DNA of 64,000 nt from Macrostomum lignano (GCA_002269645.1 NIVC01002351.1:117790-181789); one strand, 5' to 3'. Shown: positions 3,060 through 64,000, counted from the stretch's first letter. Numbers and translations are program-made. The notes: generated by a model from the sequence alone, not told the origin.

Positions 3060-3215
3060 AGATGAGGGGGTGGAGAGGGGAGAGAGGAGAGAAGTGAGAG
3101 GAGAGGGAAGAGGAGAGGGGAGGGGAGAGGAAAGAGAGTAGAGAGGAGAGAAGAGGAAGGAGAGAGGAGAGGAGAGGGGACAGAAGGAAGAAGAGAGAGA
3201 AAGCTGAAAAGAGAC
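3060..3215. repeat. GA-rich low-complexity tract
   Basis: Purine-only (GAG/GGA/GAGAG) run. Confidence 0.85.
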
Positions 3216-22920: not shown

Positions 22921-24741
22921 TTATTGTCCACCAGGATATGGTGCACCACCTTGCTGTGCAACCGGATATGGTCCACCACCTGGTTGTGCACCAGGATATG
23001 GTGCACCACCTGACTGTGCACCAGGATATGGGGCAGAACCAGACTGCATGCCAGGGTAAGAAGTATCGCCAAAAAAGCCACCCGAAATTCCGGCACCACC
23101 AGCGGCTGACGGAGCGTCGTTGCGAACTCGAGGCGGACCAGCTCGAATTCCGCGACGCCTCATCCACTCGCACACCTGATTCGGAAGCTCCGCCAGTACC
23201 TCCTTTGCCAAGGCATACCTGCTGCGATCAATGTTGCCACCCTGAATGAAGCGACGCAAAGGAACGAATTGGACGACATCTCTTTCGGCGATCATCGACC
23301 CGCAGCGAAGTCGCTTGTCGTCTGAGTCCAGATCCTTCATAGCCGAGAAGTCCTCGTTTCCGACACCAACTATGATTATAGACATCGGTAGAGATGACGC
23401 CTTGATGATTGCCTGCTTCGTCTTCTCGAAGTCCGTGATGATTCCGTCAGTGATGATCAGCAGTACAAAGTACTGAGCTCCTGTCTGGTGAGCCGCAGCC
23501 ATTGACGCTACGTGGTTGATCACGGGCGAAAAGTTTGTCGGGCCGTACAGTCGCACCGCTCTGATGCAAGACCGATAGGCCGCGAGAAGACCTGGCATTC
23601 CTGCGCAGTACGGGTTTTCGGGCTGCAGAGTCAGCGAGAACGCATCCTGAACTCCCGAGAACATTGGAGGCAACAGAGCTCCGAAGCCCAGTCCGGGAAA
23701 CTGCTTGTCTGAGTCGTAGTCCTGCACGATCTCTCCTACCGAAATTATCGCCAGCTCGTACTGGTTCGGTCGGCCGTCGGCGCTCACGTGGTGCAGCGAG
23801 TGAGGGTCTCTGGGGTCTCCATTGCTACCCGTGAAGTCGATTGCAACCGTGAAGTGCAGCTCAGTGCCGCCCTGAATGTAGTCGACGAACGAGTCGATGG
23901 TCTCGATTCCGATCTGGCTGAACACGATGGTTCCAGCCGACTTTTTCTTCTTGCTGATGAGGGTTCGTTGGGCGGAGCGGCTTTGGGCGACCTCCTGCTC
24001 CAAGCTCTCCAGGCTGCTGTAAAAGCTTCCTATCAGATCATGAGAGCCGTCTCCGTCATAATCATAGCAATCAAATCGTAGGATTAAACGCTTATTACCA
24101 CGACAGATTCGAGCGACTGGTACAGAAAACATTGCCCATCGTGGGTTCAAGTTATTCTTGATAACCTCCGTTCGATGCACAAGAGACCAATTGCGAACGT
24201 GGTTTAACTCGTCTTCGCTTGTTACATCTTCAAGTGGTTGATAGATTTCAAGAAATGGATCTGATTTGCCAAGAAAGTCTTTTTTATCAAGTTTGTGCCC
24301 TTCAATTTGAAAGTTAACAACTTGCTTGCACTCTTGAACTTCTACACAGGTTACAGTAATGATGGACGTCTTCGAACTTTTTGTCCTGCAAAGTTTAGTT
24401 TCGAATCGACGTCGGCTTACAAGCTCGCCGATCGAAGTCTCCAACTCGCCGAGAAAGTCGTGTTCAGACAGTCGAGCACTCGGACTGTCCAAGTCGTAAA
24501 TTTGAAACTTCACCAGCTGACGCTCCTCGAACATGAAGTCGACAATGAACCGATGGCTGAATTCGGGATCAAGCGTGTTGTTCAGTCTCTCAGTTCTGCC
24601 GATTTCTTGAAAATTGGAAGTTCCCGGCTGGCGCAGGAACAGGACGCACTGAGGATCTGACTTGGAGGTGACGTCGCGGTCAGGCAGATTTCTGCAGGAC
24701 ACGCTGATCTCAACGCGACTGGTTAGGCTTGGGCCGGACAT
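22921..24741 (-). CDS. CPNE: Copine paralog 1 (C2A-C2B-vWA, Gly/Pro/Tyr-rich tail), intronless CDS, 606 aa
   Basis: SRVEISVSCRNLPDRDVTSKSDP, LDKKDFLGKSDP, vWA motifs FTVAIDFTGSNG, QYFVLLIITDG, LPMSIIIVGVG, RDVVQFVP. The ATG at 24741 follows a CAG splice-acceptor-like site. Confidence 0.95.
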   Translation of the reverse strand: MSGPSLTSRVEISVSCRNLPDRDVTSKSDPQCVLFLRQPGTSNFQEIGRTERLNNTLDPEFSHRFIVDFMFEERQLVKFQIYDLDSPSARLSEHDFLGELETSIGELVSRRRFETKLCRTKSSKTSIITVTCVEVQECKQVVNFQIEGHKLDKKDFLGKSDPFLEIYQPLEDVTSEDELNHVRNWSLVHRTEVIKNNLNPRWAMFSVPVARICRGNKRLILRFDCYDYDGDGSHDLIGSFYSSLESLEQEVAQSRSAQRTLISKKKKSAGTIVFSQIGIETIDSFVDYIQGGTELHFTVAIDFTGSNGDPRDPHSLHHVSADGRPNQYELAIISVGEIVQDYDSDKQFPGLGFGALLPPMFSGVQDAFSLTLQPENPYCAGMPGLLAAYRSCIRAVRLYGPTNFSPVINHVASMAAAHQTGAQYFVLLIITDGIITDFEKTKQAIIKASSLPMSIIIVGVGNEDFSAMKDLDSDDKRLRCGSMIAERDVVQFVPLRRFIQGGNIDRSRYALAKEVLAELPNQVCEWMRRRGIRAGPPRVRNDAPSAAGGAGISGGFFGDTSYPGMQSGSAPYPGAQSGGAPYPGAQPGGGPYPVAQQGGAPYPGGQ

Positions 24742-26194
24742 CTGTAATTTTTTGCACAAATTTTCTATCGCTTAAGTGTTGAAAAATTGTAGGAATATCT
24801 CAACTTAAGCCATACTGACTGACAATTAGGCTAGTTCTGTCGGCTGTAAACTTAAGTATTGCGTTGGATATAGCATTGAGACACAGTCGGGGCTTATATT
24901 ATATATTAAAAAAATTGAACCTTAAAATACAGAAGAAACAAACCTTTATTTTGCAACCAATTTACCGCCAAAACATTAAGCTAAATATAGAACCATGGCG
25001 GACGCACCAAGTTTAATCTAGTAAAAGCAAGGTAGAAATAAAAATTGCTTGCTTCATTTACGCAACTAAGTAGGTCATTGCTTCACTTTCGTCGCTTTGC
25101 GAAAAGAGTTAGTCATCTTTTCAGCAAAGCTTGCTACAGGCAAGAGAGAGACACTTAAGCGCCTGTTCAATAACCAAACACACGTAGCACTGAAGCAAAC
25201 TCGTAACAATATAATGCTTTCGTATACGTGATGCTTGCATACTACGAATTTCTAGCGACTGCCAAAACCACAAAATATCTTTACTGTCTTGTTGTGTGGG
25301 TTAGTATGCCAGAACCTTGTGCAAACATTCAGTGTAGCTATTTCAACTCGATTTGTAAGGCCACATTCGAATACACGCTGAGCATTCAAGTGTATGCTTA
25401 TCGAGAAAATCTAAAAATAGCCTGCTTCTCAAACTTAATAAGATATGGTAGCTACATTTAGATTCAATGTACGCTCGTGCAGTATATTCATCGCCATATA
25501 CTAAATTTAGTATACAATTAATATATTCTGAAACTCTGAATAGCTTCCAGAAGGTCGTCTAGCGTAATCACTTATTCATAGTTTCAGTTAAAATAAATTG
25601 ACTAAAAAGCAATGTTTTTCGCCAGGAAAACCTCTGGGAGCTATACGTATATTATTCACAACTAGCGTAAACTGGCAAAACTTCACGGATCGCAGGACAG
25701 TAACAAAAAACAAATAATTATAAAGGAATAAAGACGGATTGCTTTTTTAACGCTGAATAAACACAACTGGAACCTCCATCGGACATTGTATGGATGTGTA
25801 TGGATCCTAAAAATATGTGTATGGATAGGCTTGTACATATCCTTTATAGCTTACTTTTCGTTAATGTAAGCAATGGTGGTATGAGTAGAACCGAGAGCTT
25901 CGAACCGGATTGAAACATAGAGAGAAATATATGGCCGGGAAATTGCGTTGTAGGCAAAGTTCTGCGTGTTGACGTAACTACTGATTGCTTCTCTTAGAGA
26001 GAAATCACCTGATTGGTTACTATACAGTGAAAAATCGATTAAATATGTGTATTAATATGATACAAAAGCTCTGATTTAGTAAATACCTGGAGGATGAAGT
26101 ATTGTATACGTCATTCCAAACTATTGTAGTAGTGTCAGTGAATGGAGCACACACGGCACAGAGGGAGGCGTGGGCACAGAATATTACATACGAG

Positions 26195-26864: not shown

Positions 26865-28610
26865 CATACGAGTAATTCTGTGTAAATTCCTTGGATGTGG
26901 GGAAGAAGCCCTCGCTATCTACCATAAACTAAGTTTCACTGCAACAGGCTAAATAAAAACGTTTCTGTAGTCTATGGCCGTGCCTAAGCGGGGAATGAAC
27001 TTTATTTAGCGTGTCTTGGTATGATATTAGCAAGGCTGCAAAAAAGTAAAAAACTGGACTCAAAATGAGAAGCAAACAACAGCATAAAAACAAAACAATT
27101 TTTGGTTGCAGAAAAAAATATAAAATTGTCGATAAAAATTCTGCAAGAACAATACACATTAGATTAAAAATGTGCTGCAAAATTTAAGAAATCATCACTT
27201 TTCGACAATAGCAATGTAATTATTCATATTTAATTTGTTGTACAACATAGCTAGCTGTACCGAAATATTAAATTCAACACATAGACACTTAATATTATAG
27301 ATATAAATATTTAGCTCAAGACACTAAGCGTAGGAAAGAAGCGATCCTTAGTTTAAAACACAGTTTAGAGCTAATTATAAAATTGATAATAGAAACGCCG
27401 ATACGGAAGCCAACAAAAGCAGTAAAACATAATTAAAATGATCTACTGGATTTGAAAATTGCTCTATAGGAAACACTTTTTACGATTATACTTGAATAGT
27501 GACTGGTTACAAGCAATTTAAGCACTAAAATATTACATGATTAATTCAATAATTAGAATTTTTATCGTCAATATTGCTTTGGTCGATTAAGAGCTCATTC
27601 ACACCGCCATTAAACAACGCCAAGTTTCATGTAATTACAAAATTTGTACATTGTACATTAACTCCTTCTCAACATCAGTCGTGGAGTGCCGGCCATAAAA
27701 CAGCGATGCTATCTACGAGCTAGTGCACGAGTGCTCAAGAGTCAGCGAAATGGGCCTTACAGTCTGTAGACACGAAATCACCGAAGGCGTTGCATTAGAG
27801 AGCCCACGATCCCTTTATTACAGTGAATGACTGTAAACGCTTCATTTATGACAATATGATGACGGTGTGAAAAAATTAAGGTGACAAGAAATCACTGTTT
27901 TAATAAATAAAGTACTAATGTTTAGCTATTGGTCATCATTGATTAAAACTCAAAATTCTTGATGCAGTGCTGCATAACTGCAATTTTTTATCGGTATAAA
28001 GTGGACAGGAACATCCAACCTGAACATAAACAAATGTACAATAACATCGATTCAAGGAGCACTGGGAGGCACACCCAGATACGGAGGTACTGAAGCCTGG
28101 GCGCCGCCAGAAGCGGCAGGATAGGCCGGCGGTGGTGCAGTCGGAGCCGCAGCTCCAGGAGCATAGACTGGACCTGCAGGATAGCCAGGCTGAGGGGCGC
28201 CAGGATATCCTGGACCCGATTGAGGCACACCGGGATACGGAGCACCAGGATATTGAGCTCCTCCTGGTTGAGTGCCAGGGTACGGAGCGCTTCCAGGAAT
28301 TCCGGCACCACCAGCAACTAACGGAGCGTCGTTGCGAACTCGAGGCGGACCAGCTCGAATTCCGCGACGCCTCATCCACTCGCACACCTGATTCGGAAGC
28401 TCCGCCAGTACCTCCTTCGCCAAGGCATACCTGCTGCGATCAATGCTGCCACCCTGAATGAAACGACGCAAAGGAACGAATTGGACGACATCTCTTTCGG
28501 CGATCATCGACCCGCAGCGAAGTCGTTTGTCGTCGGAGTCGAGCTCCTCCATCGCAGAGAAGTCCTCGTCTCCGACACCAACTATGATTATGGACATCGG
28601 TAGAGATGAC

Positions 28611-31600
28611 TGTGAAAACTCCACTTCGGGGGTAAGACCCCCCCCCAAAGGCAGAGAGCTTGTATTTAATATAGCTGGCCAACAATAAAGGTTGTCTGAC
28701 AAAGCGTAAGCCAATCACACGCGCGCGTGCAGGTGTACACCTGCACTGTACATTACACTGAGCGGAGCAACTAACTGAGCAGACCCACGCTACCACATCC
28801 CTCCCCATCTACATGGGGATCAGGGATCGCAAGAGAATACATTAGCGCAACACGTTATAGTGTGAGGAACAAAAACTCAATACATAACTTAATAATAAAT
28901 AATAATTAACCAGTACCAAAACTACGAAAACGCCAGATAGGAAAGCAACGACACAACAGAATAAGGAAAATAAACCATAACCATAACAAAGTTCAAAATC
29001 CAAATTTAAACGTCCGAACACTACAGTCAATCAAAATAGTCTCTTTCACAGATGACGTCACCCGTAGCTCAGGCGCTCCGGGGGACGTCGAACTCGCGAC
29101 GATCGGCGCAGAGACCCGTCGATCTCAGGGTCTCCAGGAGCAGCCAGGTTTGGCGGCTCGTCTACGGCCGGCATCGCAGCTTCCGGCTCAGGTGCGGCCT
29201 TGGCGTCGGTAGCACCGTCTGTCACGCCAGCTCCTGTAGGCCGCGGCTGCTCAGGACCACCGCGGACATGGTCAACGTGCCGCCGCACCACTCGGTCGTC
29301 GCCATCGAAGCCGCACAGGTAGGAGGCCGGACCGGCGGCACCGACAACTCGCGCCGGCTTCCACCGACCTCCGTTGGCTCCAAAGTCTCTGGCCAGTACA
29401 GCGTCTCCAGTCTCGAAGGTCCGGAACCGAGCTTTGCAGTCGTGGTGCTCTTTTTGCTGACCTTGCTTACGCTGTACTCTTGCTCCCAGGTCTGGCCGAG
29501 CTCGATCTAGCAACGTGCACAGTCGCCGTCCCATCAGGAGTTCGCAGGGAGCCACACCAGTTGTCGCATGCGGAGTGACCCGGTAGCTCAGCAGGAACCG
29601 GGCGACCTTATCCTCCAAGGAGCCTTCGCGCTGCTTCTCCAGGGACCGCTTCAGCGTCTGGACAGCTCGTTCCGCCAGGCCGTTGGACGCCGGATGGTAG
29701 GGAGCAACGCGCACGTGCTGAATGCCGTTCTTCCGCAGAAAGTCGGACATCTCCTCGCTGACCAAGTTGGGCCCATTGTCCGACACCAGCACATCTGGCA
29801 ACCCGTGCGTCGCGAAGCTGGAGCGGAGTTTCTGGATGGTCACAGCTGAGGTCGCTGACGTCACCACATGCACATCCAGCCACTTTGAATGGGCATCGAC
29901 GACGACCAGCAGCATCTTGCCAGACACCGGACCCGCATAGTCGATATGCACTCGAGACCACGGTCGGTCAGGCCACGGCCACGACAACATTGGCGAAGGC
30001 GCCGGGGCGTTCTGCAACTCCTGACAGTCAGAGCAGGCCTTGGCCAGGTTTTCAATCTCCGAGTCTAATCCTAGCCACCAGAAATAACCTCGGGCTAGCG
30101 TCTTCATGCGTGACGCCCCCGCATGACCTTGATGCAGCACCTGGAGCAGTGCAGCTCGCGCTCCGACCGGGACCACCACTCGAGCGCCCCACAGGAGGCA
30201 GCCGTCTTGCACACTGAGCTCAGCCGCTCTCTTGGAGTATGGCAGCAGATCGTCACTGACCCGCTCTGGCCAGCCGATTTGCGTGAAGTGCAGAGCTCGG
30301 GCTAGTGTGGGGTCCCTTCGAGTCAGGCCGCGTATCTGAGCTGCCGTGACAGGTCCATCGTCCAGGTGGTCCATCAGCATGACCAGCTCTGCCAGCTTCG
30401 GGACCGTCGCCGGCTTGTCGGGCAGCGGCAGGCGACTCAGGGCATCGGCGCACAGCAGTGAGGCTCCGGCTCGGTGAACCATGCGGTAGTTATAGCCAGA
30501 CAGCAGCAGAGCCCACCTCTGAATTCTTCCAGATGCCAGGGCCGGCACGGCCTTGTTCTCAGCAAGCAATCCAAGCAGAGGTTTGTGGTCACTCACCAGC
30601 AGAAATGGGCGGCCGAACAGGTACGCGTTGAACTTCTTGACCGCAAACACTACCGCGAGGGCTTCCTTCTCGAGCTGCGAGTAGTTTTTCTCAGCGTCGT
30701 GCAACGTACGCGAGGCAAAGGCCACAGGCCGGACAGCTCCATCGATCCTGTGGCTGATGACCGCGCCCAGACCGTAGGGGGACGCGTCGCACTCGAGCAG
30801 CAGGTCTTCGCTCGGGTCAAAGTGCGCCAAAACCGGAGCCGAAGACAGCAGGGCCTTGCACTTCTCGAAAGCGGCGTTCTGAGCAGCGCCCCAGTTCCAG
30901 CGGTGTTGCTCGCGCAGCAGCAGGTGCAGCGGTGCCAGGACTTGAGACAAATTAGGCAGGAACTTGCCATAGTAGTTCACCATGCCTAGGAAGCTGCGCA
31001 GCTGAGTTGCGTCCTTGGGAGCTGGAGCGCTGACAATCGCCTCGACCTTGTCTTTGATCGGGTGCAGGCCGTCGGCATCGATGCGGTGACCGAGATAACT
31101 GACGCTCGTCTGCATGAACTGGCACTTCTCCAGTTTGCACCGGAGGCCGCTCTGGCTCAGCTTCTCCAGAACCTGCTCCAGGGAGTTCAGATGACTGCTG
31201 TCGTCCTTTCCGGTGATGATGAGGTCATCGATGAAGCAGGCGGTGCTGGTGATTCCTTGCAGCAAGCAGTCCATCCGGCGCTGGAAAATCCCGACCGCTG
31301 GCGAGACACCGAAGGGCAGCCGCGTGTACCGAAGCAGCCCTTTGTGCGTATTGATCGTGCAGACTTCCTGGGAGGCCTCATCGAGTGGTAGCTGCATGTA
31401 CGCCTGCGACAAGTCGAGCTTAGTGAAGAGCCGCCCACCAGTCAGCTTCGCGAACAGCTCTTCGATCCGCGGCAGAGGATACGAGTCGGGCTCCACGTTC
31501 GGGTTGACGGTCTGCTTGAAGTCGGCGCAGACCCTCACAGAGCCGTCGGACTTGAGCACTGGCACCACCGGCGATGCGTACTCGGAGTGCTGCACGGGCA

Positions 31601-31887
31601 CCAGGATTCCTTGTTCGATCTCGCGGTTCAGTTGGCTCTCCACCTTGTCCTTCAAAGCGAATGGGAGATTCCTGGCCTTCATAAAGCGGGGTTGAGCATC
31701 GGGTTTCATATTCAAACTCACTGGCGGTCCGTTGTACTTTCCTAGCTCAGGCGAAAAAACATCGCTGTACTTGTCGAGCAGCTGCTGCAGTCTGGGCGAC
31801 ACCCCTGGAGCAGCCGCCACAGCCACTGTGGGCACTGTGAGCAGCCACTGAGCGGAGCAACTAACTGAGCAGACCCACGCTACCACA
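28611..31887 (-). mobile_element. Ty3/Gypsy LTR retrotransposon, internally deleted (no gag/protease, truncated 5' LTR)
   Basis: TG...CA termini; 5-bp TSD ATGAC (28606-28610, 31888-31892); complete 187-bp 3' LTR at 28611-28797; PPT AGATGGGGAGGGA at 28798-28810; only 42 bp of 5' LTR remain (31846-31887, identical to 28756-28797). Confidence 0.95.
29058..31845 (-). CDS. pol: Gypsy pol (RT-RNase H-integrase), open frame but no ATG start or upstream gag/PR
   Basis: RT: YPLPRIEELF, KLDLSQAYMQ, RLPFG, FIDD. RNase H: CDASPYGLGAV, DHKPL. Integrase: H-x3-H...C-x2-C, HIDYAGP, SDNGP, SNGLAERAV. RT-RH-IN order is the Gypsy order. Confidence 0.93.
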
Positions 31888-34757
31888 ATGACGCCTTGAT
31901 GATTGCCTGCTTCGTCTTCTCGAAGTCCGTGATGATTCCGTCAGTGATGATCAGCAGTACAAAGTACTGAGCTCCTGTCTGGTGAGCCGCAGCCATTGAC
32001 GCTACGTGGTTGATCACGGGCGAAAAGTTTGTCGGGCCGTACAGTCGCACCGCTCTGATGCAAGACCGATAGGCCGCGAGAAGACCTGGCATTCCTGCGC
32101 AGTACGGGTTTTCGGGCTGCAGAGTCAGCGAGAACGCATCCTGAACTCCCGAGAACATTGGAGGCAACAGAGCTCCGAAGCCCAGTCCGGGAAACTGCTT
32201 GTCTGAGTCGTAGTCCTGCACAATCTCTCCTACCGAAATTATCGCCAGCTCGTACTGGTTCGGTCGGCCGTCGGCGCTCACGTGGTGCAGCGAGCGAGGG
32301 TCTCTGGGGTCTCCGTTGCTGCCCGTGAAGTCGATTGCAACCGTGAAGTGCAGCTCAGTGCCGCCCTGAATGTAGTCGACGAACGAGTCGATGGTCTCGA
32401 TTCCGATCTGGCTGAACACGATGGTTCCAGCCGACTTTTTCTTCTTGTTGATGAGGGTTCGTTGGGCGGAGCGGCTCCGGGCCACCTCCTGCTCCAAGCT
32501 CTCCAGACTGCTGTAAAAGCTGCCGATAAAATCGTGCGACCCGTCGCTGTCGTAGTCGTGGCAGTCGAAGCGAAGTAGCAGCTGCCTGTTTCCGCGGCAC
32601 AAACGGTTCAGTGGAACCAAAAATTTGGCCCATCGCGGGTTCAAATTGTTCTTGATTACTTCGGTACGATGTACAAGTGTCCAATGTCGGACTTTATTGA
32701 CTTCATTTTCACTCGTAATTTCCTCCATTGGCTGATAAATTTCAAGGTAAGGATCGGATTTTCCAAGAAAGTCTTTTTTGTCAAGCTTTTTTCCTTCGGC
32801 AATGAAACTGACTATTTGTTTGCACTCTTGAAGCTCGAAACACGTGATTATAATTGTGGACTTCTTGTGTCCAGTTTTGGACAAAGTAGTTTCGAATCGA
32901 CGTCGGCTTACAAGCTCGCCGATCGAAGTCTCTAACTCGCCGAGAAAGTCGTGTTCAGACAGTCGAGCACTCGGACTGTCCAAGTCGTAAATTTGAAACT
33001 TCACCAGCTGACGCTCCTCGAACATGAAGTCGACAATGAACCGATGGCTGAATTCGGGATCAAGCGTGTTGTTCAGCTTTTCAGTTCTGCCGATTTCTTG
33101 AAAATTAGAAGTTCCCGGCTGGCGCAGGAACAGGACGCACTGGGGATCTGACTTGGAGGTGACGTCGCGGTCAGGCAGATTTCTGCAGGACACGCTGATC
33201 TCAACGCGACTGGTGAGGCTTGGGCCGGACATCTGGAACAAGTTAGTACCGATTAAACTCGATTCGGTTTAATACAGATTACCGCCCGTGTAATCAGTGT
33301 AGCTTTACTTTACTTGCATAGAAAAATGTCACCCTCATAATGCTACAATCGATGAGCAAAGTAAACATCCTGCCCTAAAATAGGTTTGCTGTTATCGTAC
33401 TTTACTCGTTCAGGATCTGAAGAATAAGATTATATGCCTATGCAAGAGGCCATTGGCAATGAACTAATCTTAGTAATTACGACCTAGTTCTAGATTAGGC
33501 ATGCAAACTTGGCTGGAGTTACTATTTTAGAAAGATTAACTGGAATGTTGTCAAGAAGCAGTAAATGATTTATTAACTAATAATTTTATCGTACTTTTGC
33601 ACAATTCCATAAGGAACAATTTAAATATTTGGAAAATCAGCACTTTTTGAATAAGCGAGATTTTTTTAGGCCTTGATCAAGTAATATAACGAAGCAAAAA
33701 TATAATGAATATACAATTTCAGCATTTAGCTTGACGGCAATGTCGGAATAGCAGACGTACCGGTAGGTATTCAAAACCAGTAAATATTAATTTCGTGGAT
33801 ACATGATTTAAAAACATACAATTGCGGCGAAATTGGATTGGCAAATAGTAGCAGTATAAATAGAGTGGGAAAAGTATTTTAATTAAAGTACAAAACAGTT
33901 CACGTCTTATCCGTCGGATGCATTAATCTTTTCTTGTGGAAAGCAAAAGCAGAATAACTATTTAGTAACAAGAATTATATTTTCATAACTACTGACGAGC
34001 AGCACTTTAAATTACGATTTCCAATAGCATTCTATGGAAAAATTAATAATTTCGATAATATTTTTATGTAAACTCGTAGTCACTGCTTGCTACGTAAGGA
34101 AAAATGATCTTTCTAACCCGTCAGACAGAAAATTAGGCTTTTTTATTGCCTATACTCAATACAAATTAAAGCCAGCTTAGATCATTAACAGCTAGCAGAA
34201 ACTCTGCCGATTACAATAGAAAACCAATTTGAATCTTTTTTAGGCATCTCAACTTTATGACAATTTGGTTAGAATGCATTCGAGTTGCTGATACTGGTAT
34301 AGAATTTCTATTCTTTTCAGTGTGGCCATATGTGACGACGTCGTTAGCATCTTAAATTTTTAGTTTCTATGTGAGTTTTTATTACTTAAAATTATTATAG
34401 TTGATTAATTTGCAGGTTCCCCAGCTATTAATTTAATGTAATTTATTTAGAAAAAATGTACTTAAGTTTTATTTATTTAAGTCCAAGTTATTACTACTTT
34501 TTTGATAGATATCTTAGGTTTAAATGAATCGGATTTCCCCGCCAATTTAAATTGTTGCCTCGCGCTCGTTTTGTACTCTCCTCAACTCGGCATTTTGTCT
34601 CGTACCATGCGTGTCAACACTACTAATAATTGAACTAGCTAACCAATAAATAAATACTAATAAATAATTAACAAATAATTAATTAATCGCTGACTACATC
34701 TCGAACTCGCTACGTCACACATAGATAAGTGAAACGAGCGGGGAATAATGTATCGGT

Positions 34758-35352: not shown

Positions 35353-37491
35353 TTAAGGAGCACTGGGCTGCGTCCCTCCGGCTACAGAGTAATTTTGAGC
35401 CAAGTGGCCATAGCCGGCTTGACGAGAGCTCACTTGAATACCGGGGTAATTTGCGGCGCCATACTGGCCTGGACCAGTAGGATATCCTCCAACATTTTGA
35501 TAAGCACCAGGATACCCTGCGCCACCAGTAGGAGCACCAGGATACCCTGCGCCACCCGTAGGGGCACCAGGATACCCTGCGCCACCCGTAGGGGCACCAG
35601 GATACCCTGCGCCACCCGCAGGGGCACCAGGATACCCTGCGCCACCCGTAGGGGCACCAGGATACCCTGCGCCACCCGCAGGGGCACCAGGATACCCTGC
35701 GCGACCCGCAGGGGCACCAGGATACCCTGCGCCACCCGCAGGGGCACCAGGATACACTGCGCCACCCGTAGGGACACCAGGATAAGAAGGAGCTGAAGCA
35801 GGAGAGCCATCAGTACCTGGTGCGGCAGTAAATGAGGATGGGGCAACAGGGCCTGACGCTGGAACATTTGAATCAGATCGCACTTTAGGCGGACCAGCTC
35901 GAATTCCGCGACGCCTCATCCACTCGCACACCTGATTCGGAAGCTCCGCCAGTACCTCCTTCGCCAAGGCATACCTGCTGCGATCAATGCTGCCACCCTG
36001 AATGAAGCGACGCAAAGGAACGAACTGAACAATGTCTCTCTCAGCGATCATCGAACCGCAGCGAAGTCGTTTGTCGTCGGAGTCGAGCTCCTCCATCGCA
36101 GAGAAGTCCTCGTCTCCGACACCAACTATGATTATGGACATCGGTAGAGATGACGCCTTGATGATTGCCTGCTTCGTCTTCTCGAAGTCCGTGATGATTC
36201 CGTCAGTGATGATCAGCAGTACAAAGTACTGAGCTCCTGTCTGGTGAGCCGCAGCCATTGACGCTACGTGGTTGATCACGGGCGAAAAGTTTGTCGGGCC
36301 GTACAGTCGCACCGCTCTGATGCAAGACCGATAGGCCGCGAGAAGACCTGGCATTCCTGCGCAGTACGGGTTTTCGGGCTGCAGAGTCAGCGAGAACGCA
36401 TCCTGAACTCCCGAGAACATTGGAGGCAACAGAGCTCCGAAGCCCAGTCCGGGAAACTGCTTGTCTGAGTCGTAGTCCTGCACAATCTCTCCTACCGAAA
36501 TTATCGCCAGCTCGTACTGGTTCGGTCGGCCGTCGGCGCTCACGTGGTGCAGCGAGCGAGGGTCTCTGGGGTCTCCGTTGCTGCCCGTGAAGTCGATTGC
36601 AACCGTGAAGTGCAGCTCAGTGCCGCCCTGAATGAAGTCGACGAACGAGTCGATGGTCTCGATTCCGATCTGGCTGAACACGATGGTTCCAGCCGACTTT
36701 TTCTTCTTGCTGATGAGGGTTCGTTGGGCGGAGCGGCTCCGGGCCACCTCCTGCTCCAAGCTCTCCAGGCTGCTGTAAAAGCTGCCGATAAAATCGTGCG
36801 ACCCGTCGCTGTCGTAGTCGTGGCAGTCGAAGCGAAGTAGCAGCTGCCTGTTTCCGCGGCACAAACGGTTCAGTGGAATCGAGAATGGAGCCCATTTTGG
36901 GTTTAAATTCTTTTTAATGAATTCGGTTCTGTGCACCAAGACCCAACTGCGAACTCTGGGTACTTCTGATTCAGTTTGTATTTCATCCATCGGCTGATAA
37001 ATCTCCAGAAAAGGGTCAGACTTGCCAAAGAAGTCTTTCTTGTCAAGTTTGACGCCTTCGACGCGAAAATTGGCAATTAGTTTGCACTCCTGAAGCTCCA
37101 AGCAGGTCAGTATAATGAGAGATTTTTTTGTACTGCCAGTCTTGGTCAAAGCCGCCTCGTACTGTCGCCGACTGACAAGTTCACCAACAGTGGTCTCAAG
37201 TTCGCCTAAAAAGTCATGGTCCTGCAGGGCTGCGCGCGAGCTGTCAACATCGTAGAGCCGAAAAATGACTACCTGTCTTTCCTCGAAGCAGAAGTCTACT
37301 TGAAACTTGTGATTGAATTGCGGGTTTAGGGTGTTCTGTATGCATTCAGTGCGACCAAATTCATGCGTTGATGTTGGCGTTTTCATGAACAGGACACACA
37401 TTGGATCAGATTTGGACATGACATCACGATCTGGCAAGTTCTTGCAAGAGACAATGATCTCCACCCTGCTAGTGAGCTGAGGAGCTGCCAT
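35353..37491 (-). CDS. CPNE: Copine paralog 3 (C2A-C2B-vWA, YPGAPxGGAG decapeptide repeat tail ending PSAP), intronless CDS, 712 aa
   Basis: Same copine motifs as paralog 1; a 30-bp coding repeat at ~35500-35790. Confidence 0.95.
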   Translation of the reverse strand: MAAPQLTSRVEIIVSCKNLPDRDVMSKSDPMCVLFMKTPTSTHEFGRTECIQNTLNPQFNHKFQVDFCFEERQVVIFRLYDVDSSRAALQDHDFLGELETTVGELVSRRQYEAALTKTGSTKKSLIILTCLELQECKLIANFRVEGVKLDKKDFFGKSDPFLEIYQPMDEIQTESEVPRVRSWVLVHRTEFIKKNLNPKWAPFSIPLNRLCRGNRQLLLRFDCHDYDSDGSHDFIGSFYSSLESLEQEVARSRSAQRTLISKKKKSAGTIVFSQIGIETIDSFVDFIQGGTELHFTVAIDFTGSNGDPRDPRSLHHVSADGRPNQYELAIISVGEIVQDYDSDKQFPGLGFGALLPPMFSGVQDAFSLTLQPENPYCAGMPGLLAAYRSCIRAVRLYGPTNFSPVINHVASMAAAHQTGAQYFVLLIITDGIITDFEKTKQAIIKASSLPMSIIIVGVGDEDFSAMEELDSDDKRLRCGSMIAERDIVQFVPLRRFIQGGSIDRSRYALAKEVLAELPNQVCEWMRRRGIRAGPPKVRSDSNVPASGPVAPSSFTAAPGTDGSPASAPSYPGVPTGGAVYPGAPAGGAGYPGAPAGRAGYPGAPAGGAGYPGAPTGGAGYPGAPAGGAGYPGAPTGGAGYPGAPTGGAGYPGAPTGGAGYPGAYQNVGGYPTGPGQYGAANYPGIQVSSRQAGYGHLAQNYSVAGGTQPSAP

Positions 37492-45978: not shown

Positions 45979-55938
<9,960 letters not shown>

Positions 55939-56694
55939 CTTCCAAGGTGTTGTTTTAAACAAATGGAAACTGTTGTGACTAAAATTTGTCAAGAATTATA
56001 AACATTTTCTGCATTGATGTCTAACTTCGAACTTGGCTCGAAAGTATTTAGGACCAAGTTCATCAAAATAATTTGACTACTATAAATATGACGCGATCTG
56101 TTGTGAACAAAGAAATGCAGTCTAGGTATTATGGTTAGGTAAGCTAAGGGACTCCAGGATCTTTAGGAAAAAAGCTACATGTATGTAAACGCGGACTATA
56201 TATAAGAGCTATTAGAAAATGTGATAAAATAGTCAAATAAAACACTTCTCACCTCTGCAGCCATATTTAATATAGAGACAGAGAAAAATTATAGCTAGAA
56301 AAAACACACAGCCGCTGGCCCAGCCACTCTGTCAAATTTATCTTTCAAAATGGCGCCATAAATGTGTCCTCGCGTACATAACGAAGATCGTTATAAGCAC
56401 TGAATAAAGCCGGAATTTCTATCGCTCAAAAAGTTTTCTATCCAGACTTAATTTTCATTTATTCGTCTCGCATTTACACCCAAACTTGCATTTATGATTT
56501 TAAAGCTCTATTTACAGCTCCATTTATATTTACAGCTTTAAAAGATAATAAAATATATACACAAATAATAAAATGTGGAAATTTGAAATTTGAGCATGAA
56601 CAAGACATTGTGTCAGATATGCGACTCGTATGTTATTGCTTAGTCAGAAAAAAATTGAACTGAACTATTCTGATACAAAAATAAATAAGGCACG

Positions 56695-57545
<851 letters not shown>

Positions 57546-58429
57546 TTGACTGATAGATACTTTAGTTTCAAACTGTTTTTACTGAAGTAAGAAATCCCTC
57601 CCACACTACTGAAACAGAAGCCCAGTAGCTTATCAGAACATGATGAAAATGTCTGGCATGTAAATGGCACGAAAGGCACGGAATTGAACTCGCTGACTTT
57701 GGCACAAATGCCGGCCGTGTTCTCAGTAGCTCTTATAATTTTTTTATGCTGACCGAAAAAGAAGAATAAAAACTTACCTATAGCTGAGATCAAAAGCGCT
57801 CATTTATAGACAGGCCGGTAAAAAAGGTTTGAAAAACCAATGAAAGAGAAAATTCAAGCCTCTCAATGGAAATTCACGCAGAAATTGATCTTGTAGGAAA
57901 GTATATTTCTCCATGGAGTCGAATAGATGTTAAAAATATTTTTATACATCCAAATAGACTACATCATGAAGGCTTACATCCAAGACGTGGGTTGAAGTCC
58001 AGTGACACGTTTGTTTACCTGTTCAAAAATTCGCCAATAAGCTGTAAGAATACTCCCAAACTGATTAAGTGTTAGTCTGGAATGGGATTTGCTACTTTGA
58101 AGCAACTGTTATTAGAGAAGGACATTGCGTCGGGGGTGCTTGAGGCTCCTCTCTTACCCTATTTTAGTTTAGTACAGACCTTCGATTTTAGCCATCTGCG
58201 AAAAGCAACGATGATTTTAGGGAATTCAGCAAAGCCGAATGTTTGAAGAGCGTGCTAAAACTGCTGCTCGAAGCTTAGTGGAGATGAGCAAACAGTTGAG
58301 TATAGATATGATGCAAAGTGTGTAGAAATGTTAGTCTCTTAGAGAGGAGACTCGCAAATACAGTCATTCACTTTATAAAGCTCATCTTCACACTTTTTAG
58401 TATGCAATAGATATTGGGTAAAATAATTT

Positions 58430-58770
58430 TCAATAGCCCTCTTTGTTGACGCAGAATTGCCGCTGTAGGGGGCGCCCATTCCGATAACCCCTGGTGACCT
58501 CGGTCAAGCTGGTGCTGCGGTGTCGCTCAGGGAGATCCGGTGGTGCCGGTGGTCCGCCTCCGGAGAGTTCAGGAGGACAATGGAGGTGGATGGCCGCTCG
58601 CCCGGTAGCCATCAGGTAGCGGACGAGCTGGCAGAGATTCTCGGGCCTGAAAACGCTGGAGAGGTCCGAGTTTGGGCCGAGGTAGGTGAGCTTGTCCTGA
58701 GTAAAGGCACAGTCACACAGATGAAGTGCTGTTGCTGTCCGAACCCATGTGATCTTGAAAGTTTCTGACA
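58430..58770 (-). mobile_element. Degraded non-LTR retrotransposon 3'-end fragment
   Basis: H(F/L)ICDC-like motif (frameshifted) followed by LG...ENLCQLVRYLMATGRA; homologous to 18455-18575. Confidence 0.5.
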
Positions 58771-61078
58771 AACACGCACTTTATTTTAGTCACTGTGCTG
58801 ACGTCAGTCAAAGAGATAAAATAACAAATTTTTTCCAAAGGCCGTTTTAATAATGAATGACTTTGACTTTGACTTTGGCTTTCGAATGTAATTGCCAAAG
58901 CCCCTGGCATAGAATTACCACAACACCAGGCCAGTGGTGCTGCGACAGGAAATTGCTTAGGGCGTGTTTTGTATTTTACATTTGGGCAGCAATATAAACA
59001 CCGGTAATTAGTTAAAGAAGGATGAGAATGTAAACAGGAGGAGCTGACGATTTATCAGATTTTAATTTGTAGAGAATGCCTCTGTTTTCCAGTATCTAAC
59101 GGAGAGTTTTGAGCAACAAATTATCGTCGTCTTATGGCCACGCCCTAGCAACTATACGAAAAATGTGTGCGTGCTAACGGTATAATACATCTACCTGCCT
59201 GGTGGCTCACCGAGCTGATAGGAAGAAAGGCACACTCTGTCAGGGAGAGGCGAAGAATACGAGAATATGAGTGAATTCCTTCAAGGCCTATACGATGAGG
59301 TTGCACTGCAAACCCTTGAGCCAACGCGGGAATAATGCTTGTACTGCAAACAGAATGAGCTGTGTCTTCGATTCAACCGGCCCCGGCTAGTCCCAGCCAG
59401 TCCACTAGCAACTCAGTGGCTCAAATGTTTCTTTGCATTAATAAATTCATCGGGGAGAAATATTGATTAAGGAGGTAAAAAAGTAAAGACCTCCAGCTCA
59501 CTGGCAAAGGCAAGGAAAATTTCTGACTCGGCTTCAACAAGCTGCTGAGATGTTTTGGATGTGCCTGCGGTTTCCAATAGAAACCAAAATAAGCCATGCA
59601 TATTTTCTTTGTATTTTTAATTCACCTGACTAACAGAACAGAATAGTTTTGCAGATTGTGCTCAAGACGACTCAAGTAGAAGGACGGGGAACTGCGTTTC
59701 TTGGTTTTACCAAAAATATACATTCCGAGGGAATGGAGGCTCTCAATTTTTTCGCACAAAATTTGTTTAAAATTGCTTTTGCAGTAGAAGGCAGACCCAA
59801 GGAATGAATTAAGGTGCGCTATTTTTTATAATTTTAGGCACAGGACATGCAGGTACATGTAGGATATAAAATTGACACAGATTCATAATTTTTTAAACAG
59901 AATGATTTTGCTTTGTATGCAAGGATCGCAAAGGAAAAAAGGGTTTTTTGTTTCACCATTAACGCAGTACCCGAGGCAATACCTGATTAAAAATTGTTGC
60001 AGCCTACCGAAGGTGCTTGGATCGTACAGTTTATAAACTTAGTTTCTATCCTACTGTATCTGGGACTCTGACTTTCTACTTGGTCAGGTAAAATGAATAA
60101 GCTGTGAATTCTTCAGGCTTCGGCCTTGCTCCTTTCGCTTCTTCCACCCCTGCCAGCAAAGGAGGATCGCGATGCTCGTGACGCATTAAAAGAAAACTGC
60201 AACAGATGCCGTCTTATTTCATTTATTCAGTCGGTAGCTCGCAACTCATGCTCGAAGCCAACGCTAGGTCTCTTTCACCCTGGCTGTCGGGTTTATCAAT
60301 ACACATGCATACTGCTCCATCATAGACTCAGCTTTCTTCCCAAAACTTGGCAAAAATTTGCTTCTATAATTGAAAGGCTTCCGTCATTGTCGGTCTGAAA
60401 GCTTTCCGCATTTTAGCAACCTGTCAAGTTCTGACACTGTTGTTTTCAATCCGGCTCTTTCTTAGTCCAGTGAAACAATATTTCAATGCCTATCGGAATT
60501 CCAGTTACCTCCAAAGAAGAAGTATGAAACCGCATTATCAATTCCCGATGGCACTTGATATAATTTGATTGACGTCCCGTGTCTGCAAATACCCAATATC
60601 TGTGATGAGCATCATTTGCATATATCTAGATATGTGTGCATTAACAACGTCATCTATTTAATAATACTTGCATTGCAAGTATTGCTAGTATTGGTGTACT
60701 TTGAAGACGTCTGTAGTACCAGAGTCGGGTATTTTTCAGTAGTCTCAAAGCAGTGTTCAAGCCAAGCTCAAATGAAAAAAGCAACAATGATTCGCATAAC
60801 GAAAGGTATTGAGTATTCTTTTATCAGACACAATCGTTTATTGCCAGAAAAAGGGAATCTATCAATAGTTTTTTTCACGATCGTTAAATTACCAAGCTTG
60901 GTGATACAGTGGCTCAAGGGGGGATTGGAGCGGTTGCGAGCGAGTGTCTGTGTGTGTGTTAATTCAGTCAGTTTTGTCTGCTTGCAGCGCTTTTAAATTT
61001 TCGAATTAGCATTCTGTCGAGTACAGTTAATCCATTTTGGCTCGGGTTGCTCAGGATTAGAGACACGCCAGAAGATTC

Positions 61079-61549
61079 TTAGCCCAGTCGAGACTGGGCG
61101 CTCCAGACGCGCTTGTCGAGGTTCGCCTCTTCGATGGTGTCGATGGTGTCATCCCAGTCCTTCTTTCCCAGTCGGGAACCGGCATGCCAGGCCTTCTTAC
61201 CCAATCGGGAACCGGCATGCCAGGCCTTCTTTCCCAGTCGGGAACCGGCAAGCCAGGCCTTCTTTCCCAGTCGGGAACCGGCATGCCAGGCCCTCTTCTT
61301 TCCCAGTCGGGAACCGGCATGCCAGGCCTTCTTTCCCAGTCGGGAACCGGCATGCCAGGCCTTCTTCAGCACAGCATCGTAATAATCAGAGTCAGCTCTA
61401 TCCATGTGCATCCTGTACATTGCCTCCAGTTCGTCCAGACTGTCTCCGTCATGATGTTCGTCGTCTACGGCATGGTGAGACGAAGCTGAGCAGGACACTA
61501 CGGCAATGGAGATCAGCAGTAGAGTCGCAATTAACGGGTGCTTCAGCAT
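61079..61549 (-). CDS. Neuropeptide precursor (AWHAGSRLamide family), single coding exon, 156 aa
   Basis: Signal peptide MLKHPLIATLLLISIAVVSCSA; acidic/His-rich propeptide; 5x AWHAGSRL-G, 1x AWLAGSRL-G and a terminal VWSAQSRL-G, flanked by KK/KKR/KR. Confidence 0.93.
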   Translation of the reverse strand: MLKHPLIATLLLISIAVVSCSASSHHAVDDEHHDGDSLDELEAMYRMHMDRADSDYYDAVLKKAWHAGSRLGKKAWHAGSRLGKKRAWHAGSRLGKKAWLAGSRLGKKAWHAGSRLGKKAWHAGSRLGKKDWDDTIDTIEEANLDKRVWSAQSRLG

Positions 61550-62832
61550 GTCCGTTCCTGCTGGCTCAACGTCGTCAGTCTGTGGGTAATCAGTAGAGTT
61601 CGTCAAGACGTGTTAAGCCCTGTCGTTGAGATAGCACGGGAAGCGAAGCAACTGGGTTAGCCAGGAGCAGTGAGTCCCCTTTTAGAACTGGGAGCTGGCG
61701 TCGCTACTGATGCTGCAGGCCAATCGCCTTCCGATTAGGAGGGGTGGGGCGAGTTCTCGTGCGTCACACGACATTGGTTGGCTGAGCAAAAGAGTGGATT
61801 TTGGGAGTTTCAGCGAATCGTTTCTAAAGCCGTATGGAATCAGGATTTCAAACAAGAATTGTCTGTTGGTAGTCATGGATTCGTGTACCTAGCCGTATCA
61901 GTTACAGTTTCTCAGGATAGCATACCAAGAGTTCAGGATGTGAGCACAGTGTTCTGCAGGATGTGAGCTTTGCACCAGCAATTTGAACTTGTTTAAATAA
62001 TTCTCTTTGCATTCGTTGTTGATTTTGTGTTTAAAATCAATACGCGCTTCGGGTCCCAATGGACTGCCTCTCGGAGAGCAGATTTAGCTGAAACCATTCA
62101 GCTCTGTTCACTTAGGCTCGTTCAATCAGGCTGGCTTTAGCGCTAATTCAATTTCAATCGGATGATGAAAGCTGGATCAGTCAGTTTAGATTGCTATTTT
62201 TGCAAAAAACCGCCGTATTTAACAAATGGATTATCGGTTAGAGCTTGATGTTAAAATAGATTTTCGAATTGACAGCTTAAAACCGCGGCTATTAGCGTAG
62301 AATCTCGTCGATTTTGTTATACTCGCAGTTCGACGTAATTACGTTATTACGTCTCGAATGCGGCACGCGAATCGGCAATCCAGTATTTTTATGCGCACTC
62401 CATAAAACTGCAATGAATACATTTCGGGCGAGAGATGGTTGGGAAAAATTGAGGATCTGGGTTAAGCCGCGAAATTTATTCCATTAGTCACAAAATACAG
62501 GGCACGCAATTGCGACTCCATAAAGGTAGTCAGTTGGCAATAAAATATCATATTGGGGAACAGATTTTAGTAAACTGGGACATGAAACTTTATGCCAAAA
62601 CTTTTATAGAAATATTTTACAGGCTGGTGTACCTAATTAGAACTCTGAGATTCAAAAAGGTAGCAACAAATCATTTAGTTGGGGTGGCTGAATATCTCAA
62701 GAGGTCCATAAACCCGGGTAGAGGTATCCGGAATTGATTCCGTGCTCGCCTATGAGACCTCAAGGAACGGAGTCCGTACACTGCTTGACGATAAGAAAGT
62801 TCAGGGGCGCTGCTAACACCCAGCCTGAGCAG

Positions 62833-63177
62833 CAGGCACGTCGTTACCGGGGGGGGGGACAGGGGGGACATGTCCCCCAGAAAAGCTCTGGGGGACATGC
62901 CAATGCTTTGTCCCCCACCCCACCTTGCCAGTCGTTTTGGTAATCAATACTTTTTCTACAGGGTGCTAAATATAGCGCCTTCGGCGCTAAAATGAGTGCC
63001 TGCAACGCTAAAATGAGTGCCTGCTGCGCTAAAATGAGTACCTGCGGCGCTATAATGAGTGCCTGCAGCGCAAAAATGAGTTCCTGCGGCGCTAAAATGA
63101 GTAGGCCTAAGTTTAGTCATGTACATCTTGAATTCTTGGCTTTGTCCCCCCACCATAAATCCATGGCGACGCCCTTG
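62833..63177. mobile_element. Short copy of the same hAT-like MITE as 51272-53011 (opposite orientation, ~6 satellite units)
   Basis: Ends CAGGCACGTCGTTA...TGGCGACGCCCTTG; the arms match 51272-51345 and 52950-53011 in reverse; degenerate flanks CCTGAGCA / CCCGAGCA. Confidence 0.8.
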
Positions 63178-63606
63178 CCCGAGCATGTGTATGCGCACAC
63201 ATCCACTTGTGTGCGTACAGCTCAGAGTGTCCGGGAATGACTGTTTGGCTGGCGGGTCAACTGTTTGCCTTGATCTGGGGGGCACAGCGCCCAACATCGA
63301 GAAAAATAACTGACTAAACATCTATTCGATTGACACTATAGTTTCTTTATGAAGTAAACTAGTCAGTGATGGTAAAGTGATGGTCCAAAATGGAACAAGT
63401 CACAAAACATTACAGGTCACAGGTAGCTTTCGATTTTGGTTTAAATTTTGCCAAACGAACGCATTCTGCAGTGATTAAAATTGGTTTATCGGTTTATTGA
63501 GGGCATAGGCATGCATGCGCCCGACGACTCTCGCATTGCAGTGCGTGTCTGTGTACAGTATTGGCGCTCCTGTATGAGCGATCAGGAGTCAGCGGAATGG
63601 GCGGAA

Positions 63607-63915
63607 TTAGTTGTGGGACGATGTCGTTAAAGGCGTTGCGCCAGGGTTTGTACACCTTTTCACTTTCCCTTTTGAACTACCTGCAGCCAATTTTAGTTTT
63701 ATTGCATCCTGTTCCGACAATTTTTGGTTGTGACGCAGCATTGTTTTTAAATCAGTTTCGACAAGCTGCGATACAGATTCAACATTTTGCACACATTCCA
63801 ACAAACAGTCGATCAGTTTTAACAACTGCCAACCAATTCCGGTCAAGTGAGGTAAGAAATTATCACCTACGCTTTTCTGGTTTTGAAATTTCCATTCCAA
63901 AAACTCTTCATAAAA
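63607..63915 (-). CDS. Possible terminal exon of a gene entering from beyond the window
   Basis: A non-repetitive, helical-looking open frame (FYEEFLEWKFQNQKSVGDNFLPHL...) with a CAG acceptor candidate near 63912 and AATAAA about 110 bp after the stop. Identity not established. Confidence 0.3.
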   Translation of the reverse strand, partial: FYEEFLEWKFQNQKSVGDNFLPHLTGIGWQLLKLIDCLLECVQNVESVSQLVETDLKTMLRHNQKLSEQDAIKLKLAAGSSKGKVKRCTNPGATPLTTSSHN

Positions 63916-64000
63916 TTCTGCACTTACATTATGAAAGCAGTTTACCAGGATCAATTAAATACAAACCGTTTAATCTATTCCTTATGGAAGCAACCATCGG

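Follow-up and report, generated by a model that had tools for sequence, protein, structure and literature searches.

Among the neuropeptide precursors described in flatworms, a group of ten planarian prohormones was named "RL/RMamide" by Collins et al. (2010) because their peptides end in Arg-Leu-amide or Arg-Met-amide; the group is descriptive, and it is not a proven clade. One of these prohormones, Smed-spp-1 (GU295176), encodes three copies of AYWASRMamide, with a KK site and, before it, a propeptide rich in Asp (Collins et al. 2010). In Schmidtea mediterranea, mass spectrometry (MS) detected this peptide as KK.AYWASRMa.GKR, i.e., amidated and released by cleavage after KK, together with other KK-flanked peptides. 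SPP-1B has full MS coverage, and spp-1 is expressed in the brain, the nerve cords, and the pharynx. A first reading of the DNA studied here, made from the sequence only, had named AYWASRMamide as a planarian peptide, and correctly so: it is the amidated product of Smed-SPP-1 found by MS after KK cleavage.

Two further systems are relevant for the comparison. The cestode gene npp-30 has a precursor in which the last peptide ends with a Gly followed directly by the stop codon, an ending also present in the planarian SPP-4, SPP-5, and NPP-22. Luqin-type peptides are the other system. According to a review on luqin, the cestode npp-34 precursor is luqin-type, and S. mediterranea has four luqin-type genes, two of them without the Cys pair. 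In the same review, flatworm luqin precursors are described as divergent, lacking the Cys pair and carrying the peptide at the C-terminal end, and its supplement includes multi-copy insect RYamide precursors with a ...GSRY-Gly motif (e.g., in Nasonia).

The DNA that we analyzed, hereafter the window, is a stretch of 64,000 nucleotides from Macrostomum lignano and corresponds to the final 64 kb of contig NIVC01002351.1 (GCA_002269645.1, assembly Mlig_3_7; 100% identity over window positions 56079-64000). On its minus strand, from 61549 to 61079, translation gives a 156-codon ORF closed by a TAA stop (61081-61079), within a coding exon that begins at 61579; the assignment of the coding sequence is based on translation, ATG context, and codon usage. 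The product is exactly the one proposed in the sequence-only reading, in which the strand was not given: a signal peptide and seven Gly-extended peptides, five of them AWHAGSRL, one AWLAGSRL, and one VWSAQSRL.

The precursor starts with a predicted signal peptide (residues 1-22, positions 61484..61549, minus strand), with cleavage predicted after residues 21-24. It was assigned by rule, on the basis of the n/h/c regions and of hydropathy. The N-terminus, MLKHPLIATLLLISIAVVSCSA, opens with a short, basic n-region that includes K3, continues with a hydrophobic core of 14 residues (Kyte-Doolittle hydropathy peaking at 3.31 over residues 10-18), and closes with a c-region of small residues, SCSASS, containing C20, the single Cys of the precursor. 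Residues 23-61 (61367..61483, minus strand) form a propeptide, recognized by its composition, which had been described as acidic and His-rich; residues 24-61 indeed include 9 Asp, 3 Glu, and 5 His among 38 residues.

The propeptide is followed by a KK site and six tandem units (61166..61366, minus strand; AWHAGSRLG five times and AWLAGSRLG once), identified by translation and by Tandem Repeats Finder (TRF). The single units lie, on the minus strand, at 61360-61334, 61327-61301, 61291-61265, 61258-61232, 61225-61199, and 61192-61166. The sites between them are KK in four cases and KKR in one, and a KR precedes the seventh unit, in agreement with the earlier statement that the spacers are almost all KK. 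Downstream, translation gives a KK, the acidic spacer DWDDTIDTIEEANLD, and the KR (61109..61165, minus strand), then the diverged unit 7, VWSAQSRLG (61082..61108, minus strand), which directly abuts the TAA, the Gly-stop ending having also been predicted correctly. All seven units end in R-L-G, and each of the seven is bounded by KK, KKR, or KR on its N side and by G-KK or G-stop on its C side. In general, all the sequence-level tests (signal peptide, Gly-dibasic periodicity, in-frame array, motif kept in the diverged unit 7, codon usage, gene structure, and the transcript-derived GenBank model) agree with a multi-copy precursor of predicted amidated peptides.

To place the exon junctions, we mapped two public proteins onto the window (tblastn) and then read the splice borders. 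Both public models include a 5' exon that covers at least 61926..62062 (minus strand) and is probably an untranslated leader. It is separated from the coding exon by a 346-nt intron (61580..61925, minus strand; GTATGC...CCCACAG, with GT at 61925-61924 and AG at 61581-61580). A canonical AATAAA poly(A) signal, recognized by sequence only, is located 236 nt past the stop (60837..60842, minus strand).

The two public models read the 5' exon in different ways. The deposited model, PAA58649.1, is 150 aa long and starts from the ATG at 62012, which is in frame once the leader is spliced and would place 39 residues ahead of the signal peptide. The other model (A0A1I8FZ11) reads 62062..61922 in a different frame and without a Met. 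For neither frame did we find homologues of the exon reading. Furthermore, the context of the main ATG is GACATGC, with a purine at -3, whereas that of the upstream ATG is CGAATGC, with a pyrimidine at -3. Since the public frames conflict, no homologue was found, and the two ATGs differ at -3, the 5' exon was taken as probable 5'UTR.

The deposited model also lacks 45 codons of the array (135 nt, i.e., four units plus an AGG), so that the genomic ORF has 6+1 peptide copies and the deposited transcript-based model 2+1. The 135-nt gap was considered as a real intron and this was rejected, as no GT...AG pair fits. Most simply, the gap is a mapping artefact of a repeat-collapsed short-read transcript, or it reflects the transcript of a paralogue with fewer copies. 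A collapsed array and an upstream ATG giving the longest ORF are two failures typical of repeat-rich prohormones, and therefore more neuropeptide genes of this annotation may be hidden in the same way.

The top database match of the precursor is an M. lignano protein from contig NIVC01002351.1. The locus is present in public records as BOX15_Mlig031239g1 / PAA58649.1 / UniProt A0A267ECX1, labelled "hypothetical" or "uncharacterized" protein. A second public entry, UniProt A0A1I8FZ11, labelled "Secreted protein", is a paralogous fragment from an older M. lignano assembly, with a coding part 100% identical to that of the precursor gene and a different leader. The novelty suggested by the sequence-only reading thus has to be limited to the interpretation of the peptides, the gene itself having already been deposited in GenBank and UniProt as an uncharacterized protein. 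Wudarski et al. (2017) report that RNA was the only evidence behind the GenBank annotation of Mlig_3_7 (RNA-seq processed with StringTie/TACO, together with de novo transcripts mapped by BLAT). Because the annotation rests on RNA alone, the model BOX15_Mlig031239g1 is an indirect sign of transcription, and going by it the locus appears to be a genuine transcribed M. lignano gene.

Searching public assemblies for exact matches to the 156-aa and 175-aa products gave no record besides the GenBank contig. In the full-text literature searched, AWHAGSRL, AWLAGSRL, VWSAQSRL, "Ml-npp" names, and Mlig031239 were absent, with the proviso that the tables of McVeigh 2009 and Koziol 2016 may list the peptide. 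Neither SR[LM]G peptides nor the precursor gene appeared in the supplementary data of the polyclad larva atlas or of the 2026 M. lignano transcriptome paper, and the literature searched contained no catalogue of M. lignano neuropeptides. Word-indexed protein searches with the precursor, SPP-1A, and ppl-1 retrieved M. lignano proteins or the queries themselves only, from a database with few flatworm proteins. A metagenome pattern scan gave 99 matches, none of them a relative, and no Pfam family was matched at E-values up to 10. Considering the word-indexed search, an exhaustive HMMER search, and the metagenome scan together, no orthologue was detected outside M. lignano. The repeat ORF of one ENA contig (AWQRGLAKRLGKK repeats) has no signal peptide and was dismissed as a product of chance. 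The precursor is an ordinary lineage-specific multi-copy neuropeptide-type gene, of which flatworms have dozens.

Going by its sequence, the precursor is quite probably a prohormone of the regulated secretory pathway and a member of the flatworm RL/RMamide class, with peptides that would most likely be neuropeptides. In the processing that we propose, the signal peptide would be removed, a PC2-type convertase would cut after the KK, KKR, and KR sites, a carboxypeptidase would trim the basic residues, and amidating enzymes would turn each C-terminal Gly into an amide. At the C-terminus of unit 7, which ends in Gly-stop, endoproteolysis would be unnecessary. The predicted products are five AWHAGSRL-NH2 (one of which could be RAWHAGSRL-NH2, from the KKR site), one AWLAGSRL-NH2, and one VWSAQSRL-NH2, with predicted [M+H]+ values of 896.485 for AWHAGSRL-NH2, 872.510 for AWLAGSRL-NH2, and 945.527 for VWSAQSRL-NH2; the acidic propeptide and the acidic spacer peptide would be by-products. 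The corresponding values are 1052.586 for RAWHAGSRL-NH2, 954.490 for the Gly-extended form, and 1764.745 for the spacer DWDDTIDTIEEANLD. Processing at KK has a direct precedent in flatworms, since planarian MS shows amidated AYWASRM after KK cleavage. M. lignano has a PC2 homologue, for which in situ hybridization (ISH) suggests nervous-system-specific expression and whose knock-down is lethal in hatchlings (Arbore 2015). If planarian prohormones are a guide, these peptides would most likely be neuropeptides whose receptor is probably a GPCR; processing, amidation, neuronal expression, and receptor action are what we infer for them.

The neuronal location of the transcript is something that we infer, and some planarian prohormones are expressed in glands, sub-epidermal cells, the intestine, or reproductive organs. 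The gene could then be active in gland or epidermal cells rather than in neurons, its secreted multi-copy precursor yielding for instance a pheromone, a defence peptide, or a reproductive peptide. This is unlikely, however: many copies of short (8-aa) predicted amidated peptides flanked by dibasic sites are the typical design of a neuropeptide precursor, and spp-1, the planarian precursor closest in overall layout, is expressed in the CNS and the pharynx. As for an antimicrobial role, it would look unlikely, the peptides being too short and too weakly charged.

We also evaluated to which described family such peptides could belong. SPP-1 was the best full-length match among the nine planarian RL/RMamide prohormones compared (18 bits, against 7 at most for the others), and it was the only one of the nine with S-R-[L/M]-Gly. 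BLASTP of SPP-1 against the precursor gave E=3e-6, a value driven by the repeats. With phmmer the score was 16.8 bits, against 12.3 +/- 7.7 bits for a null with permuted cores, and an ungapped permutation of the SPP-1 peptide against the M. lignano peptides gave a P of 0.56. We found no specific similarity between the propeptide and those of the planarian prohormones, acidic composition being all that they share; the string "MDRA", common to the propeptide and ppl-1, was dismissed as not significant. Kinship with SPP-1 is not statistically demonstrable.

For an unbiased ranking, the three M. lignano peptides were compared with 35 Gly-extended peptides taken from catalogues of cestodes and planarians, the cestode source being the npp supplementary table of Taenia crassiceps, with names after Koziol et al. 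2016. At the top was, unexpectedly, the cestode luqin-type npp-34, SPQFAWRPHSRF, which had the highest score against all three M. lignano peptides (19.3; the next, npp-30, scored 12.3) and a single-family permutation P of 0.0097. A-W-H-A-G-S-R-L aligns with the octapeptide at its C-terminal end, A-W-R-P-H-S-R-F. The permutation P values for npp-30 were 0.075 and 0.31. Across the whole catalogue, the permutation P for npp-34 as the best of 35 was about 0.12 (two different nulls), and of the three look-alikes npp-34, npp-30, and SPP-1 none stands up to this test. Eight residues hold too little information for a family assignment.

The precursor could be read as a highly diverged multi-copy luqin/RYamide paralogue, with an aliphatic C-terminal amide and a luqin-type or derived receptor. 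Besides the ranking, the four luqin-type genes of S. mediterranea and the multi-copy RYamide precursors of Nasonia are in line with this idea. Nevertheless, the catalogue-wide P of about 0.12 and the structure of the precursor speak against it. The Arg-[Phe/Tyr/Trp]-amide of luqins is replaced by Arg-Leu, and of the spiralian W-R-P-[Q/H] only the Trp is retained (W-H-A-G, W-L-A-G, and W-S-A-Q), even though spiralian luqins are otherwise very conserved. The C-terminal Cys-x10-Cys is missing, the sole Cys lying in the signal peptide, although luqin precursors of parasitic flatworms lack this pair too. In luqin precursors one or two peptides lie beside the signal peptide, whereas here the peptides number seven and a propeptide of 39 aa stands between them and the signal peptide. 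On balance, we consider a luqin/RYamide origin improbable, slightly more so than expression in non-neural cells.

The sequence-only reading had also noted a loose likeness to PRXamide/pyrokinin peptides. The exhaustive HMMER search, on 1.84 billion representative proteins, gave 53 matches at E<=0.001, and the best non-self matches were crustacean pyrokinin precursors (Cherax, Penaeus, and Armadillidium), with E-values down to 5e-21; lower in rank were myomodulin-like and buccalin-like precursors and junk repeats. When the six variable residues of each unit were masked with X, the scores remained at 55-71 bits, whereas masking of RLG-KK dropped them to about 0. The score depends wholly on RLG-KK, and thus the similarity to pyrokinins consists only of the amidation/cleavage periodicity plus Arg-Leu. 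The masking experiment leads us to reject the HMMER matches as homologues, with no precursor homology to pyrokinin past the processing motif. Of the likeness, the common RL-Gly-KK periodicity stands and nothing more.

Moreover, the M. lignano peptides do not conform to F-x-P-R-[L/M/V]-amide: A-G-S-R-L has neither the Pro at -3 nor the aromatic at -5. As both defining residues are absent and the similarity is only periodic, the precursor is not a pyrokinin. A variant of this idea would make it a PRXamide/pyrokinin (neuromedin-U-related) member in which Pro changed to Ser, perhaps together with planarian spp-1. The crustacean precursors that lead the non-self matches (E=5e-21) would be expected under it, and among the planarian RL/RMamide peptides the AYWASRM of SPP-1 is the nearest to the pyrokinin-like YFSPRM of ppl-1 (right-aligned score of 18, against 5 at most). 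We hold this variant to be very unlikely, given that the score survives masking of the peptide cores and vanishes with RLG-KK, that Pro -3 and aromatic -5 are both missing, and that true PRLamide/PRMamide precursors exist as separate genes in cestodes and planarians (npp-35, ppl-1, and spp-3).

A more basic point is whether the array is coding at all. TRF describes it as a 33-bp unit repeated 6.5 times (61150-61366, 92% matches), with a single indel, an in-frame AGG. Four of the six units are identical in nucleotides, and the whole set shows three codon changes, two synonymous and one His>Leu. Unit 7 has many base differences, yet W, A, and S-R-L-G are kept, with synonymous Ser and Gly codons. 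The near-identical units of about 33 bp fit the recent internal amplification that had been proposed, but concerted evolution would give the same picture.

Minisatellites are frequent in the window (about 20 arrays, whose periods range from 4 to 147 bp), and many of them have long stop-free stretches, so a stop-free ORF over a repeat is weak evidence when taken alone. Other features set this array apart. In a six-frame scan of the 64 kb for G-[KR][KR] sites within 120 aa, the precursor ORF has six, and the sole other stretch with at least three is a low-complexity Gly/Arg/Glu-rich one (3066-3245). Within the window, the combination of G-dibasic sites and non-repeat flanks encoding a signal peptide is found in the precursor ORF alone, and G-dibasic periodicity was absent from the other tandem arrays (0/17 checked). 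Using the Pfam-verified genes of the same window as reference, the codon-usage log-likelihood was +0.16 bits/codon for the whole ORF and +0.25 for its non-repeat parts, and it was negative in the other two frames and on the opposite strand. The 63 N-terminal codons scored within the top 2.3% of random chunks. That the array is non-functional, either a minisatellite that happens to be open or a decaying duplicate gene, is suggested by the several long stop-free runs among the about 20 minisatellite arrays, by the many redundant copies of M. lignano, a recent polyploid, and by the lower number of repeats in the transcript-derived model, but it is extremely improbable in the face of a repeat period divisible by 3 with its single indel in frame, non-repeat flanks giving a signal peptide and a diverged unit 7 that keeps the motif through synonymous changes, positive codon usage in the precursor frame only, a transcript-based model on record that includes a spliced leader exon, and a paralogue fragment (A0A1I8FZ11) 100% identical in the coding part although its leader differs.

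To our knowledge, no flatworm other than M. lignano can be stably transformed on a routine basis. This analysis is useful mainly because it corrects the gene model and offers a candidate ligand in a species where transgenesis is possible. The corrected seven-copy precursor can be a source of reagents (synthetic peptide, antibody epitope, ISH probe, and promoter for a neuron-subtype reporter). Rhodopsin GPCRs that are specific to flatworms and still orphan are numerous, and in parasitic relatives they attract interest as targets for anthelmintics; the predicted peptide would be a candidate ligand for them. Should intermediate taxa confirm a connection with spp-1, npp-30, or luqin, this would help to sort the confusing RL/RMamide peptides of flatworms. 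A wider and rather speculative reading, to which we give little credence, is that AWHAGSRLamide, AYWASRMamide, and GFLTASRLamide belong to a single SR[L/M]amide family spanning the flatworm phylum, derived from a luqin/RYamide (or PRXamide) duplication with an aromatic to aliphatic switch at the C-terminus. If true, it would imply a co-evolved, Platyhelminthes-specific lineage of orphan receptors.

Comparing the precursor with each of the known systems, the resemblances are partial in every case. Pyrokinin precursors share the many tandem copies ending in R-L-Gly-KK/KR with a period of 11-13 residues; both those of crustaceans and planarian ppl-1 (YFSPRMamide) differ in the Pro at -3 and the aromatic at -5. 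The myomodulin-like flatworm prohormones (mpl-1/2 and npp-6, with A[V/I]RL[M/L]RLamide) have in common with M. lignano the C-terminal RLamide, the multi-copy layout, and the RL/RMamide class. Their core is instead [M/L]-R-L, they had the lowest scores in the peptide ranking, and the myomodulin C-terminus [M/L]-[L/M]-R-L-amide is absent from the M. lignano peptides.

The luqin of npp-34, SPQFAWRPHSRFamide, has A-W at -8/-7 and S-R at -3/-2, as in M. lignano. Arthropod RYamides have G-S-R-x-amide, with multi-copy luqin-type precursors in insects, and flatworm luqin precursors are, like this one, without the Cys pair. Unlike the M. lignano peptides, luqin/RYamide peptides have Phe, Tyr, or Trp at the C-terminus and an R-P following the Trp.

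The peptides of npp-30 (T. crassiceps TcrWFU_06536; GFLHSGRLamide and GFLTASRLamide) are also 8-mers whose second residue is aromatic and whose central residues are small, and they end in [S/G]-R-L-Gly; AWLAGSRL and GFLTASRL share four identities plus four conservative pairs. The order of the npp-30 precursor is similar as well (acidic propeptide, amidated peptide, spacer, KR, and a final copy ending in Gly-stop). Its differences are Phe in place of Trp, RR/KR sites in place of KK, and two copies only.

Finally, SPP-1 has, like the M. lignano precursor, a signal peptide, an Asp-rich propeptide, a KK as first site, and KK alongside KR, and its copies start with Ala, contain a Trp, and end in S-R-[M/L]-Gly. 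The two differ in peptide length (a 7-mer in SPP-1 and an 8-mer in M. lignano), in copy number (three and seven), in the position of the Trp (-5 and -7, an offset of two residues), and in the C-terminal residue (Met and Leu). On the basis of these sequence comparisons, the precursor is placed as a putative member in the descriptive RL/RMamide class of flatworms, with spp-1, npp-30, and luqin as the leads.

The deposited model of the RLamide precursor gene, BOX15_Mlig031239g1 (PAA58649.1, a "hypothetical protein"), covers positions 61079-62012. This model starts at an in-frame ATG located upstream, inside a probable 5'UTR exon, and 45 codons (135 nt) are missing from its repeat array, across a gap lacking GT-AG borders. 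Repeat-rich prohormone genes may thus be systematically mis-modelled in the M. lignano annotation.

Directly downstream of the RLamide precursor gene lies a multi-exon P-type cation ATPase gene (46733-55992, minus strand), encoding the Cation_ATPase_N, E1-E2, Cation_ATPase, Hydrolase and Cation_ATPase_C domains. Its introns are packed with long minisatellites, at 48908-49565 (20 bp, 33 copies), 51364-52896 (21 bp, 73 copies) and 54022-55082 (30 bp, 35 copies). The 21-bp and 20-bp minisatellite families were found again, inverted, kilobases away: by eye, the 21-bp unit of 51364-52896, CTCATTTTAGCGCCGCAGGCA, matches the 62965-63102 unit in reverse complement, and a similar relation holds between the 20-bp families at 17010-17411 and 48908-49565. 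This inverted recurrence suggests that minisatellite-bearing elements, possibly mobile, have been dispersed. The two 21-bp arrays flank the RLamide precursor gene on both sides. Furthermore, the spike in AT skew between 56 and 58 kb (0.41) is due to an (AGAC)n microsatellite of 845 bp (56698-57542, 211 copies).

The window also contains three tandem copine genes on the minus strand, all with C2 and Copine domains, located at 22921-24759, 28052-28714 plus 31880-33241, and 35353-37491. The middle one is split by an insertion (29058-31886) carrying a 942-aa ORF, which interrupts it exactly at Copine profile position ~133/134. With its domains for reverse transcriptase, RNase H and integrase, the ORF is of the Ty3/gypsy retroelement type; it sits in a GC-rich block (GC 0.57-0.60). 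A partial ORF at 18804-19328 (minus strand), in which both Arrestin_N and Arrestin_C were recognised, is probably a single exon of an arrestin-domain gene.

Outside the window, we compared Schmidtea mediterranea prohormone sequences taken from the supplement of Collins 2010. Among the planarian RL/RMamide peptides, SPP-1 (AYWASRM) came by far the closest to YFSPRM, the pyrokinin-like peptide of ppl-1, with a right-aligned BLOSUM score of 18; the others scored at most 5. In both arrays, KK stands at the beginning and 'GK' at the end. These similarities hint at a possible origin of spp-1 from a PRXamide gene by a Pro-to-Ser change.

The HMMER search of representative proteins, with the precursor as query, also brought up unnamed multi-copy precursors. 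P0040 (Logan assembly, 219 aa, animal) encodes about 10 myomodulin-like peptides of the form x-x-D-S-[M/L]-R-L-amide. P0011 and P0031 (ENA / marine eukaryote catalogue) encode buccalin/allatostatin-A-like AWNSGF(N)SGM/FSGGL-amide peptides, whose N-terminal A-W-x-x-G is also that of the M. lignano peptide.
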